Shown piece after piece: positions 33,527-42,882 of a stretch of DNA of 64,000 nt. Numbering within the stretch: the stretch's first letter is position 1; every line of letters starts with the position of its first letter. The notes under the pieces are model-generated. The model was not told the DNA's origin. It did no database searches and saw only the letters and a program-made list of their open reading frames with translations. The stretch covers positions 4,154,001-4,218,000 of the forward strand of contig OZ218954.1 of the NCBI GenBank assembly GCA_965112735.1, read 5' to 3'. Origin of the DNA: Phaeosaccion multiseriatum (Eukaryota > Protista > Ochrophyta, other classes). The position numbers and the translations under genes are program-made.

Positions 33527-35369
33527 CAAGTGGCTGAAGGAGTGTGGGCTGGACATTGATGCGAGACGAGGAGGAGAGGTAGCTGACGAATATTTGGACG
33601 TTAGGGATAGGACAACTCCGCTGATCCTAGCTGCCGTGGAGGGCCACTTCGCTTTGGTTCAGGGGCTTGTGGAGGAGGGTGCAGATGTGAACATTGGTGA
33701 TTGGGGTGGCTGTGTTCCTTTGGCTGCCGCTGCAGGTGGGGCCCGCGCGTGGGACTGTAGTGGGTGGGAAAGTGACCCCATAATCGTGTCGTACCTTCTG
33801 GAGCATGGGGCCAGGGTGGAGGGAAGCTCCGCCTTGCACGGTGCCGCAGAAACTGGTTGTCCTGAGTCTGTTAGCATGCTTCTCAAGGCCGGGGCCAAGG
33901 TAGAGGAAAGACACTATAATACCACCCCAGCCCAGTTTTGCTGTGAGGGGCAGGGCGAGGGCGGCACCGAGAGATTGGAGGCCCTGTCCTTGCAAATGGA
34001 GGCAGGAGATGATTTAAACGTGAAGATTGAGGAGGTTGGCCGGTCTCTCTTGCACACTGCTGCTGAAGCCGGTCACAGTGAACTCATCGACGAGCTCGTC
34101 CGTCGAGGGCTGGAGTTGGACACGAAGGACTCTAATCAGTACACTCCTCTTCACCTCGCTGCTGTTACGGGCAAGTCCACCTGTGTGAAGGCACTCATCC
34201 GCCTCGGTGCCTCCCTCGACGCTGTTGATTCCAGGGGTAACACGCCGCTCCACTTGGCTCTCAGTGCGTTTACCCTCCTGGTGGACATTGCAGCCGAGCT
34301 GATCGACGCGGGAGCCAACGTGAACGCCAAGCTAGACGACAACTTTGCACCCCTTCATCTGGCAGCGGCACGGGGCAGCATGGAGCTTGCGTACCTCCTG
34401 TTGGAGGCTGGGGCTGAGGTCGACGCACTGACCACCAAGGAGTTCAGCCCCTCGATGGTGTGCATGGCTCCTGCAAAGGCCGAAGCTTCATGCCTGGCCT
34501 TCACAGGGTCCAAGCGAGGGAGAAAGAAGGTGGCGGCATTCCTGCTGGAGATGGGCGCTGCCGTCACCAAGTCAGTCATGGCCCTGGCTGGAGAGAGCGA
34601 TTGTGGGGACGTCATTGAAGCTTTCGTCAGTGCCGCGAGAGACGCACAAACTGCTTCTGATGGTGTTTGCAATACGGTGGCTGGGCATTTCTCCGGCTCT
34701 GCCTACTCTGAGGCCGCCAAGGAGGGCCGTGTGGTGCGAGTGCGCTTGGTAGACAGGACAACGGGGAAGAGGAAGGACACGCAGTACACACTGAGCATAC
34801 CCCTGATGGAGCTACTGATGAACAAGACTGAGGGAGAGGGAGGGAGCTCTGACGGCCCGGACAGGCATGCTACGGCGGCAGGCAGTCTCCCCACCATGCT
34901 GGACCCGGCGGGGCGTGGCTTCATGGGCATCAAGAGCAAGGCCAAGGACGAGGTGGAGGTGACCTTTGACGGAGTGGACTTTACCGAGGAGGGCTTTGCG
35001 GCTGTGGTGCAGTTCGTCACGACGGGTAGCGTCAAGAGCCTGCTTACCCGAGGGCGTCGTGGGCAGCTGAGCACGGAGAGCGGAGGTGGTACGAATAGTA
35101 GCAGTAGCAGCAGCAGCTCCGATGCAGTCAGTTGCGGCGGTTATGGTGTAAGTAGTAGTGAGGCAGCAGGAGAGAGGAAGAGGGAGCGCGTGAAGCTGTT
35201 CGACGAGGTGAGAGCGCAGCAGGCCCTGCAGGCAGCGGCCTTTTTCTGCATCGAGGCCATGTCGAGGGAGGTGAAGGCGCTCATGACTCTGTACGGCTTC
35301 GAGCTGGCCAAGGAGGGGGAGGAGAAGGATGAGCCGCCGAGGAAGCGAAGCAGAGAGGAGGACCCTTAG
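33527..35369 (+). CDS. Ankyrin-BTB family copy 4, uninterrupted frame but lacking the N-terminus and an upstream ATG
   Basis: Homology starts at KWLKECGLDID (~33527) with an in-frame stop just upstream, and the frame is then open to 35369. It may be spliced to an unseen exon or be a recent truncation. Confidence 0.8.
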
Positions 35370-36369
35370 TATGTCAGCCTTCCTCTCACTGACTCATATA
35401 TTGATGGGTTCCGAAGAGTGGCGTGAGGAGAGCTGAAGCTACGATCGTAACCGTAGGAGGGTAACAACAGGTGCCATTTGTTGAACCATCACCTCGTCCA
35501 CTGTCAAACGGATGACAACCAACGTTACACAGCCCAAGACAAGACCAACAAGCAAGGTGTCTTCCAAGCAAGCCCAAGTTCAAAGTTCGAAGTAAATCAT
35601 CAAGGCTGAGAGAGAAGCAAGAACAAAGGAGACAACTCCTCTGAGTGGGCACCTACTGTAGTGGGTAAATAATGCTAGAGTGAGTCAGTGGGTAAATAAT
35701 ATGGTTATAATCATAACTGGAGTGGAGTGAGTGGTTAAGGGCTTGGAAGAAGCTCTCCCATACACGGCAACGTCGTGTCGTAGTCTACACATTTCCCCAC
35801 AAGCATTGTACACCATCGTCGAGCCATAGAGTGCCATTCTTTCCATGTCGATGGCGCTCTGTCGCTCGACTCACCAAACCTCGATTGGCAATCATTGGCT
35901 GCGGACACCGAGTACCATTCTCTGTTGTACTTAGTACGTCAAGCCAAAGAGTGCCGAATGCCTTCCTTCTGCTGCGATTGTAGCAATGGCATTCCATGGA
36001 TGGACCGCCCGACACTCTCTACACAGGTCGACAGGCACGTCTCTCCAATTGGCGAACCAAAGACAATGGGCACACGCAGATGAAACTAAACCAAATTAAC
36101 TATTTAAAAAAAAAAAAAAAAGTAAAAAAAAAAAAGAAGGGAGAAGCGGCATGCGGCCGAAAGCCGAGAAGCCAGGGGCTGGGCGGCGACCAGCAGAAGG
36201 CAGTCACCAGTGGGAAAGAGCGACAAGCCAGAAGCCAGAGGCGGCCTACGGCCGAAAGCCGAGAAGCCAGCGCTGGCCTGCGGCCAGAAGCCTATCGCCC
36301 AGAAGCCAGAGGCCAGAGAAATAGCTTTTGGGGCCGACGACTCGATCCCAGCACACTTGCACAGTCCGT

Positions 36370-40520: not shown

Positions 40521-40809
40521 GCCCTCTGCTTTTTCTTCTCTCTGTTGATACAAACACGAATCCAGACATACAGGGTGGGAAATTTGAAATTGGTTGGGGC
40601 ATCCCCCCTGGATCCGCCCTATTTATTTTTTTTGCTTTTTTTTCCCCTCCTTCCTTCCCCCCCACCCCCCTCCCTTCCTCTTCCCTTCTCTTTCTTGACC
40701 TGATAGCTCGCTAAATCACCCAACCCGGCCAGACAGGGGGTGCTCGGTGCGGATCTCCGACGCGGGGACGCCCCGGCAAGGGCACTTAAACGAAAGAAGG
40801 GAGACAACC

Positions 40810-42882
40810 ATGGTGACAATGGGAAAAGCGCTGCAGCGGATTCAAGAGTGGCGTAATGGGAGCAGCAGCAGTGAGGGGAAGGGCGTTGGAGTGGACGAGG
40901 TTTCGGTTTTGCTGGCAGCCGTTCTGTCAACGATCGACTTTGACTCGCTGAAGAGGAAGGGTCACACGCCTCTTCACGCTCTTGCTGAGATGGACAATAT
41001 CGCCATGGAGGAGATGGGGGTGCAGATGCGGGGAAGCGTGAAGCTGCTGAAGGACTGCGGGCTGGATATTGACATGACACGAGGCGAGGCTGATGATGAT
41101 GATGGTAATCGTGATCATGTGGTTGATTATGATGATGGCAGGACCGCGCTGGTCCAAGCTTCATTGCAGGGCCATTTCGCTTTGGTGCAGGAGCTCGTGG
41201 AGGAGGGTGCAGATGTGAACGAAGGTGATCCGTGCGACTTTCTTCCCTTGTCTGCAGCTGCGGGTTTCTTTAGTGGAGCTGATAAGGATGCATCGTACGG
41301 AAGTCACCCCATGATCCTTTCGTACCTTCTGGAGCATGGGGCCAGGGTGGAGGATAGCTACGCCTTGCACAACGTAGCCGGCGCCGGCTGTCCTGTGTCT
41401 ATCAGGATGCTACTCAGGGCCGGGGCCAAGGTGAACGAGCTGAATGAAGATGGCCACGGAAGAACACCAGCCCAGTACTGCTGTGAGGGGCAGGGCAAGG
41501 GCAGCACCGCCGAGAGATTGGAGGCCCTGTCCTTGCTGCTAGAGGCAGGAGCTAATTTGAACGTGAAGGATGAGGACGGGTGGTCTCTTTTGCACTTCGC
41601 TACTGAGGGAGGTCACGTTGAACTCATCGACTTGCTCGTCCGTCGAGGTCTGGCGGTCGATACGAGGGACTCTCATCAGGGCACTCCTCTTCACTTTGCT
41701 GCCGATTCTGGCAGATCCACCTGTGTGAAGGCGCTCCTCCGCCTTGGTGCCTCCCTCGACGCTGCTGATTACCAGAAGAACACGCCGCTCCACTGTGCGC
41801 TGCAGCACGGGAAGGTGGACGTTGCTGCCGAGCTGATCGACGCAGGATCCAACGTGAACGCCAAGCGAGACGGTAACGTTGCACCCCTTCACCTGGCAGC
41901 GGCACTGGGCAGCATGAGGCTGGCGTACCTCCTGTTGGAGGCTGGAGCTGAGGTCGACGCACTGACCACCACGGAGTTCAGCCCCTTGATGGTGTGCATG
42001 TCTCCTGCAAAGGACGACATCAAAGTTTCGGATGTATGTGTCGGGTCCACTCGAGGGAGGAAGAAGGTGGCGGCACTCCTGCTGGAGATGGGCGCTGCCG
42101 TCACCAATCCGGTCATGGCCTTGGTGGGCGAGAGCGATTGTGGGGACGTCATTGGAGCGTATGTCAGCAAGGAAAGAGACGCACACGAATCTGCTGATCG
42201 TGTTTGCAACACCATAGCTGGACACATCTCTTCCGGCTCTGCACACTCGGAGGCCGCCAAGGAGGGCCGTGTGGTGCGAGTGCGCTTGGTAGACAGGACA
42301 ACGGGGAAGAGGAAGGACAAGCAGTATGCACTGAGCATACCTCTCATGGAGCTGCTGATGGACAAGACTGAGGGAGAGGGAGGGAGCTCTGACGTCCCGG
42401 ACAGGCATGATACGGCTGCAGGCAGTCTCCCCACCATGCTGGACCCGGCGGGGCGGGGCTTCATGGGCCTCAAGGGCAAGGCCAAAGACGAGGTGGAGGT
42501 GACGTTTGACGGAGTGGACTTCACCGAGGAGGGCTTTGCAGCTGTGGTGCAGTTCGTCACGACGGGTAGCGTCAAGAGCCTGCTTACCCGAGGGCGCCAT
42601 GGGAAGCTGAGCAGTAGCAGCAGCTCTGAGACGGTCGGTGGTAGCGGTGACGGAAGAGGAGGTGGGAGTAGTAGTGAGGCATCAGGAAAGAGCAAGAGGG
42701 AGCGCGTGAAGCTGTTTGACAAGGTGAGAGCGGAGCAGGCTCTGCAGGCAGCGGACTTCTTCTGCATCGAGGCCATGTCGAGGGAGGTGAAGACGCTCAT
42801 GGATCTGTACGGCTTCGAGCTGGCCGAGGAGGCGGAGGAAGAAGATGAGCCGCCGAGGAAGCGAAGTAGGGAGAACACATAA
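40810..42882 (+). CDS. Ankyrin-BTB family copy 6, full-length, intronless, 690 aa from ATG 40810
   Basis: Colinear with copy 2 from the N-terminus (LQRIQEWR) to the PPRKRSR tail. Confidence 0.92.
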   Translation: MVTMGKALQRIQEWRNGSSSSEGKGVGVDEVSVLLAAVLSTIDFDSLKRKGHTPLHALAEMDNIAMEEMGVQMRGSVKLLKDCGLDIDMTRGEADDDDGNRDHVVDYDDGRTALVQASLQGHFALVQELVEEGADVNEGDPCDFLPLSAAAGFFSGADKDASYGSHPMILSYLLEHGARVEDSYALHNVAGAGCPVSIRMLLRAGAKVNELNEDGHGRTPAQYCCEGQGKGSTAERLEALSLLLEAGANLNVKDEDGWSLLHFATEGGHVELIDLLVRRGLAVDTRDSHQGTPLHFAADSGRSTCVKALLRLGASLDAADYQKNTPLHCALQHGKVDVAAELIDAGSNVNAKRDGNVAPLHLAAALGSMRLAYLLLEAGAEVDALTTTEFSPLMVCMSPAKDDIKVSDVCVGSTRGRKKVAALLLEMGAAVTNPVMALVGESDCGDVIGAYVSKERDAHESADRVCNTIAGHISSGSAHSEAAKEGRVVRVRLVDRTTGKRKDKQYALSIPLMELLMDKTEGEGGSSDVPDRHDTAAGSLPTMLDPAGRGFMGLKGKAKDEVEVTFDGVDFTEEGFAAVVQFVTTGSVKSLLTRGRHGKLSSSSSSETVGGSGDGRGGGSSSEASGKSKRERVKLFDKVRAEQALQAADFFCIEAMSREVKTLMDLYGFELAEEAEEEDEPPRKRSRENT

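Follow-up and report, generated by a model that had tools for sequence, protein, structure and literature searches.

Indel turnover in permissive loops as the probable origin of seemingly replaced loops in a predicted ankyrin-BTB gene family of Phaeosaccion multiseriatum

Proteins that combine ankyrin (ANK) repeats with a BTB/POZ domain, such as those with the ABTB1/ABTB2-type architecture, are candidate cullin-3 substrate adaptors. Among designed ankyrin repeat proteins (DARPins), the LoopDARPins of Schilling et al. in 2014 carry a loop that reportedly replaces the β-turn of an internal repeat. The loops in which LoopDARPins vary are those along the finger edge of the scaffold (PMC5405424). 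The DNA described here is a 64-kb stretch (the window) of contig OZ218954.1 of the stramenopile alga Phaeosaccion multiseriatum, in which six copies of one ankyrin-repeat gene are found by tblastn when the longest of them serves as the query. A DNA alignment of these six copies contains sequence of variable length at three fixed positions (sites 1–3) within well-conserved flanks. A sequence-only reading had taken such segments for unrelated inserts, similar to the loops of complementarity-determining regions (CDRs) and replaced wholesale in the manner of LoopDARPins. All of the peptides and coordinates that it gave are found again on translation and in the DNA, together with a fourth indel site absent from its list, a linker rich in serine and glycine (S/G-rich linker). 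The variable segments are probably the outcome of insertions and deletions turning over in permissive loops, with gene-converted flanks, in a fast-evolving ANK-BTB family.

The relatedness of the loops was assessed by comparing pairwise alignment scores with those of 2000 shuffles. At site 3, bounded in copies 2, 4, and 6 by CCTGCAAAGG and GGGTCCA, as had been read earlier, all ten copy pairs are at chance level, and most loop pairs at sites 1 and 2 are at chance level as well. Related loops are present in copies 1, 2, and 6 at site 1 (p 0.002–0.018) and in copies 1 and 6 at site 2 (p 0.006). Thus, the description of variable inserts at fixed positions is confirmed, but "unrelated" does not apply universally. 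The silent-site divergence (dS, Nei–Gojobori) between the copies is 0.09–0.55, with values of 0.09–0.24 adjoining site 3, and neutral sequence at such divergence should still be 80–90% identical. Since the dS of the flanks is just 0.1–0.3, point substitution alone is insufficient to account for loops that align at chance level, and the earlier proposal that more than point mutation is needed holds. An explanation that invokes programmed or templated rewriting of the loops, be it cassette gene conversion with silent copies as donors or targeted mutagenesis, draws on the sharply conserved flanks that surround unrelated sequence at fixed sites and on the many copies in the family. However, a search for loop donors or cassettes elsewhere in the 64-kb window, suggested along with the original proposal, yielded none, the best off-target matches being at most 14 nt long and at chance level.

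All ten loops of the open copies have a length that is a multiple of three and are free of stops, whereas lengths of 17, 26, and 34 nt are found in the broken copies. These out-of-frame lengths indicate that the process itself is not frame-preserving and that selection filters its outcome. The statement that the frame is kept in intact copies is correct for the loops. Copy 4 lacks an ATG and the first ~98 codons, and copy 1 retains only a C-terminal open reading frame (ORF). The frame also bears on the idea that the loops are tiny spliceosomal introns, read through in the ORF translation and diverging freely between paralogues. The site-3 loop does start with AAG|GT (AAGG|GT in copy 1) and ends with AG in copies 1 and 2, and the 42-nt GT..AG segment of copy 1 would be spliced in frame. 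On the other hand, no stop or frame-breaking length occurs in any loop of the open copies, and when every GT/GC..AG pair around each loop of copy 6 is listed, none preserves the frame. The GT..AG segment at site 3 of copy 2 is 44 nt long and frame-breaking, neutral introns would be expected to remain alignable at the dS of the flanks, and inserts are present at the same position in distant relatives located on dense, ORFan-rich, virus-like contigs. Spliceosomal introns, for which we see hardly any chance, were rejected on frame and splice-site grounds.

Several loops can be followed through intermediate forms. Of the 18 codons in the site-1 loop of copy 6, 15 differ from GAT by at most one change, and no other window of the coding sequence reaches the period-3 score of this loop. 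The site-1 loop of copy 2 corresponds to it minus a 36-nt (GAT)-like expansion. Additionally, genomic contigs of other paralogues contain further purine-rich site-1 variants resembling that of copy 4. The closest pairs thus align through intermediates, with copies 1 and 6 sharing sequence at site 2 as well. The site-1 loop of copy 6 is identical in contigs from four runs representing two samples, and the loops are therefore stable germline sequence as far as can be seen in contigs, which drop rare (somatic) variants. Such identity, the out-of-frame loops of the broken copies, and the distribution of the loops over several separate germline genes rather than one expressed locus all speak against programmed diversification, and no associated enzyme was found among the neighbors checked, which are ORFs with a methyltransferase domain and with a glycosyl-hydrolase domain. 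We regard a programmed origin as extremely improbable. Wholesale CDR-like replacement likewise fails to find support, given the lack of a donor in the window, the loss of frame in broken copies, and the alignment of the closest pairs through intermediates. The AT-microsatellite loop at site 3 of copy 2 (VIIILRKYIYIYMY) is modelled as a β-hairpin with a predicted local distance difference test (pLDDT) score of ~57 (model entry: window 41911–42879), which illustrates how slippage could provide the scaffold with a further structured element.

Identity between copies ranges from 70% to 99% across neighboring 90-nt windows, with copies 2 and 6 being 99% identical over the 90 nt downstream of site 3. 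The quartet-informative sites in copies 1, 2, 4, and 6 support all three possible topologies (26/44/17) and cluster along the gene (p = 0.016, runs test), and the favored topology switches from one that pairs copies 1 and 2 against 4 and 6 just before site 3 to one that pairs copies 1 and 4 against 2 and 6 just after it. The mosaic identity, the clustered incongruent sites, and the switch of topology thus suggest that the copies have exchanged sequence by gene conversion or recombination and that one breakpoint coincides with the loop, and we read the pattern as the apparent signature of such exchange.

The reading that we favor, indel turnover combined with conversion of the flanks, would proceed as follows. 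The loops are structurally permissive, disordered surface segments in a young, multi-copy, intronless ankyrin-BTB family, in which ordinary germline insertions and deletions would build up, including those created by replication slippage in the short tandem repeats of a genome very rich in microsatellites, and only in-frame, stop-free versions are retained by the open copies. The framework, in turn, would be kept alike by purifying selection and by gene conversion between copies. Conversion tracts would tend to stop at the non-homologous loops, which for this reason would keep an older or faster divergence and appear to have been replaced. The data show where the loops are, their disorder, the mosaicism, the filtering by frame, and the presence of an insert at site 3 throughout the family; we infer both the exact mutational events and the blocking of conversion by heterology.

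Base composition brings in another possible origin. The loops average ~0.49 GC compared with 0.59 for coding sequence, which may reflect escape from codon selection or from GC-biased conversion. The low GC content of the loops, and the AT-rich, non-coding-like sequence at site 3 of copy 2, would also suit exonised remnants of ancestral introns, or footprints or filler that transposon excision and end-joining repair left at a preferred site; every site-3 loop starts with G and several end in AG. The terminal AG at site 3 is not significant, since its G is the conserved one of the following codon and since copies 1 and 5 share the AG by descent, and the intron-remnant idea was ruled out on these grounds. 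Site 2 lacks splice-like ends, neither transposon ends nor target-site duplications are seen, and the insert is already present in distant relatives. An origin of this kind is very unlikely.

Several observations weigh against indel turnover with flank conversion. Overt tandem-repeat periodicity is visible in just 3 of the 14 loops; slippage has therefore been shown to contribute without accounting for everything, and as a sole cause it was ruled out. Site 3 has no detectable homology in any pair, even between copies 2 and 6 with their nearly identical downstream flank, so that either several events or a conversion tract with its end precisely at the loop has to be postulated there. The copies compared are the six of the window, taken from a family suggested to number dozens. 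The presence of the loops in expressed, translated sequence is a prediction, and their stability is deduced from contigs, which cannot reveal rare somatic variants.

The structural context of the loops was derived from an AlphaFold2 model of copy 6. Pfam matches to this protein are to ankyrin repeats only (Ank, Ank_2, Ank_3, Ank_4, and Ank_5, E 1e-22 to 1e-51), and the model contains the corresponding nine helix pairs with pLDDT of 80–94. Its low-pLDDT segments, residues 114–130, 176–182, and 421–431, are exactly the three loops. Site 1 is located in the hairpin or linker ahead of repeat 1, next to the groove, whereas sites 2 and 3 are placed by DSSP between helix 1 and helix 2, at H167–172/H188–196 of repeat 2 and H413–418/H435–447 of repeat 9, respectively. 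In the established ankyrin topology, the fingers and the groove are located at one end of the repeat and the inter-helix turn at the other.

The C-terminal 255 residues have no match in Pfam, with BTB (PF00651) absent even at E ≤ 10. In the first structure model this domain had pLDDT below 50 and was unusable, and it improved only when distant homologues were included in the alignment, with pLDDT of its core reaching 70–85, a moderate level of confidence. The resulting model is assigned to the BTB core fold, which is defined by three strands and five helices, by structure and not by a Pfam sequence match. Superposition with VIA-align on BTB domains yields Z of 8–10.3 and a root-mean-square deviation of about 3.2 Å over 100–113 of 103–130 residues, and all of the 37 best-scoring chains include a BTB/POZ domain. 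The Foldseek signal is weak (E 0.13–1), with the top rows being mostly BTB or Skp1 plus ankyrin-repeat chains, the latter matching the last repeat retained in the C-terminal model. In a language-model feature search (Atlas), 22 of 30 matches are BTB. These three signals thus lead to the assignment of the gene product as a predicted ANK-BTB protein, with a BTB fold that carries two disordered inserts.

The ankyrin part of the family varies in a specific manner. In the four canonical repeats, positions 2, 3, 5, 13, 14, and 33, those randomised in DARPins, vary in 19 of 24 cases, whereas variation at the remaining positions amounts to 24 of 108 cases (Fisher p = 2.6e-7), and the ratio of replacement to silent divergence (dN/dS, ω) is 0.45–0.9 in the ANK part and 0.2–0.4 in the BTB part. 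The far greater variability of the canonical binding positions than of the framework supports the view of a putatively diversifying ankyrin family. Both results can be extended to the loops, which would then be functional specificity determinants with a CDR-like role, arising by ordinary mutation and diversifying selection in a target-recognition repertoire of ANK-BTB proteins resembling cullin adaptors. The hairpin position of site 1, adjoining the groove, agrees with such a role, as does the retention of the site-3 insert at variable length across relatives of 26–33% identity. However, sites 2 and 3 are found opposite the fingers and groove, the AT microsatellite that encodes VIIILRKYIYIYMY at site 3 of copy 2 resembles an accident rather than a selected binding loop, and dN/dS is not computable on loop sequence that does not align. 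We consider specificity determination an unlikely explanation of the loops, with a role in target choice being possible. A more elaborate scheme combines the loops with the hypervariable residues of the groove in a two-mode recognition repertoire, a "loop library" in which ANK-BTB adaptors with target-setting loops and conversion-shuffled loop alleles, held in dozens of germline copies, would serve in host–virus conflict; this we judge to be decidedly improbable.

Relatives outside the window are few. The C-terminal region had no match among 5.8 billion proteins in a word-indexed search, a homologue search with the whole protein returned a mass of generic ankyrin proteins, and no relative of the C-terminal domain was found in viral and metagenome contigs. 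When 1.84 billion representatives, a collection without the proteins of this alga itself, were searched exhaustively with a profile, five true but distant relatives were identified, all metagenomic, with 26–33% identity. The ANK-BTB family is thus lineage-specific. Site 3 and the S/G-rich linker hold an insert in every aligned member, all five relatives included, and these inserts differ in both length and sequence; the positions are therefore permissive ones of long standing and not a local invention of the copies in the window. Two of the relatives, P0121 and P0123 (ENA assembly ERZ1426853), are located on contigs of 10–12 kb with dense short ORFs lacking Pfam hits, which look like DNA of large viruses.

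The features of the window, which is GC-rich (about 58% GC), are listed in Table 1. Only copies 2 and 6 are full-length genes with an ATG, the start of copy 6 being aligned with that of copy 2; copy 4 is open but 5′-truncated, and copies 1, 3, and 5 are broken or fragmentary. The C-terminal fragment representing copy 3 is located ~290 nt upstream of truncated copy 4, an arrangement that looks like a deletion fusing two tandem copies or like a broken array. ORFs with cellular-type domains are found near and between the copies, which are therefore scattered over a region that bears other genes rather than forming one clean tandem array. In genomic contigs of four runs, the summed depth over the gene is roughly 20–90 times that of the unique flanks, a figure that is not a copy number but suggests that the family has dozens of related copies.

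Table 1. Gene copies, loop sites, and neighboring ORFs (window positions)
Feature	Position	Strand	Length	Remarks
Copy 1	2740..4444	+		N-terminal part with frameshifts and stops; C-terminal ORF 3467-4444 intact; tblastn extent 2794-4438
Copy 1, site-1 loop	2740-2756	+	17 nt	
Copy 1, site-2 loop	2869-2894	+	26 nt	
Copy 1, site-3 loop	3566-3607	+	42 nt	
Copy 2	18333..20372	-	679 aa	Full length; tblastn extent 20396-18339
Copy 2, site-1 loop	20082-20099	-		
Copy 2, site-2 loop	19941-19958	-		
Copy 2, site-3 loop	19188-19232	-		(ATT)3 plus (TA)n, 18% GC, encodes VIIILRKYIYIYMY
Copy 3	32792..33235	+		Fragment, C-terminal part only
Copy 4	33528..35369	+		Open frame, first linker to stop; tblastn extent 33528-35357
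Copy 4, site-1 loop	33579-33614	+		
Copy 4, site-2 loop	33738-33773	+		
Copy 4, site-3 loop	34479-34505	+		
Copy 4, S/G-rich linker	35058-35177	+		
Methyltransferase-domain ORF	36370-37302	-		Between copies 4 and 5; cellular-type domain
Copy 5	37511..38775	+		Degenerate; tblastn extent 37511-38765
Copy 5, site-2 loop	37674-37706	+		
Copy 5, site-3 loop	37881-37914	+	34 nt	Out-of-frame length
Copy 6	40810..42882	+		Full-length intronless predicted ANK (9 repeats)-BTB gene; ATG at 40810; stop TAA
Copy 6, site-1 loop	41089-41142	+		ADDDDGNRDHVVDYDDGR; decayed (GAT)n tract; hairpin/linker before ANK repeat 1; pLDDT <50
Copy 6, site-2 loop	41266-41304	+		FFSGADKDASYGS; helix 1-helix 2 turn of ANK repeat 2; related to the copy 1 loop
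Copy 6, site-3 loop	42013-42042	+		DDIKVSDVCV; helix 1-helix 2 turn of ANK repeat 9, the last
Copy 6, BTB/POZ-fold domain (predicted)	42265..42822	+		C-terminal; two disordered inserts, one of them the S/G-rich linker
Copy 6, S/G-rich linker	42598-42693	+		Disordered insert inside the BTB-fold domain
Glycosyl-hydrolase-core-domain ORF	47138-48514	-		Downstream of copy 6; cellular-type domain

Tandem repeats are abundant, with 435 tandem-repeat rows per 64 kb. A 27-nt repeat (alternatively of period 81) is present in 8.7 copies directly 3′ of the stop codon of copy 2 (17978–18215), its unit including GTATCACCAAC, which reads as the 11-mer GTTGGTGATAC on the opposite strand. Within an ORF-like stretch, positions 15361–15800 hold a (CCT)n microsatellite of ~147 units (440 nt, 86% matches), and a perfect (GAG)15, which reads as (CTC)n in the orientation of the gene, occupies positions 20401–20445, immediately upstream of the start codon of copy 2.

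If the reading of indel turnover with flank conversion is true, the loops cleanly exemplify a general effect, in which tolerance of indels in a loop, together with conversion of its flanks, gives the impression of replacement by design, and such mimicry should be excluded before natural CDR-like systems are claimed. The wider family, intronless, in many copies, with a variable binding face and with relatives on viral-looking contigs, may matter more than the loops; judged by its sequences, it suggests that a stramenopile alga has a putative repertoire of recognition proteins or ubiquitin adaptors, which could be relevant to conflict between the alga and viruses.

Comparison with the described ankyrin + BTB/POZ proteins reveals the same predicted order of an N-terminal ankyrin stack followed by a BTB-fold domain, although the BTB domain of this family is undetectable by Pfam and carries two long disordered inserts. 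The mosaic identity, the incongruent clustered tree signals, and the breakpoint at the loop resemble the concerted evolution of multigene families in which indel-rich loops persist as islands of divergence; the tract statistics here consist of a runs test, and the heterology block is inferred. With LoopDARPins the proteins share an ankyrin scaffold, extra loops of variable sequence, and variable canonical binding positions. In LoopDARPins, however, the loop reportedly takes the place of a β-turn of an internal repeat, whereas two of the three loops described here are found in the helix 1–helix 2 turns of repeats 2 and 9 and the third in the linker before repeat 1. Since sites 2 and 3 are opposite the finger edge, the positional analogy to LoopDARPins fails for two of the three sites.

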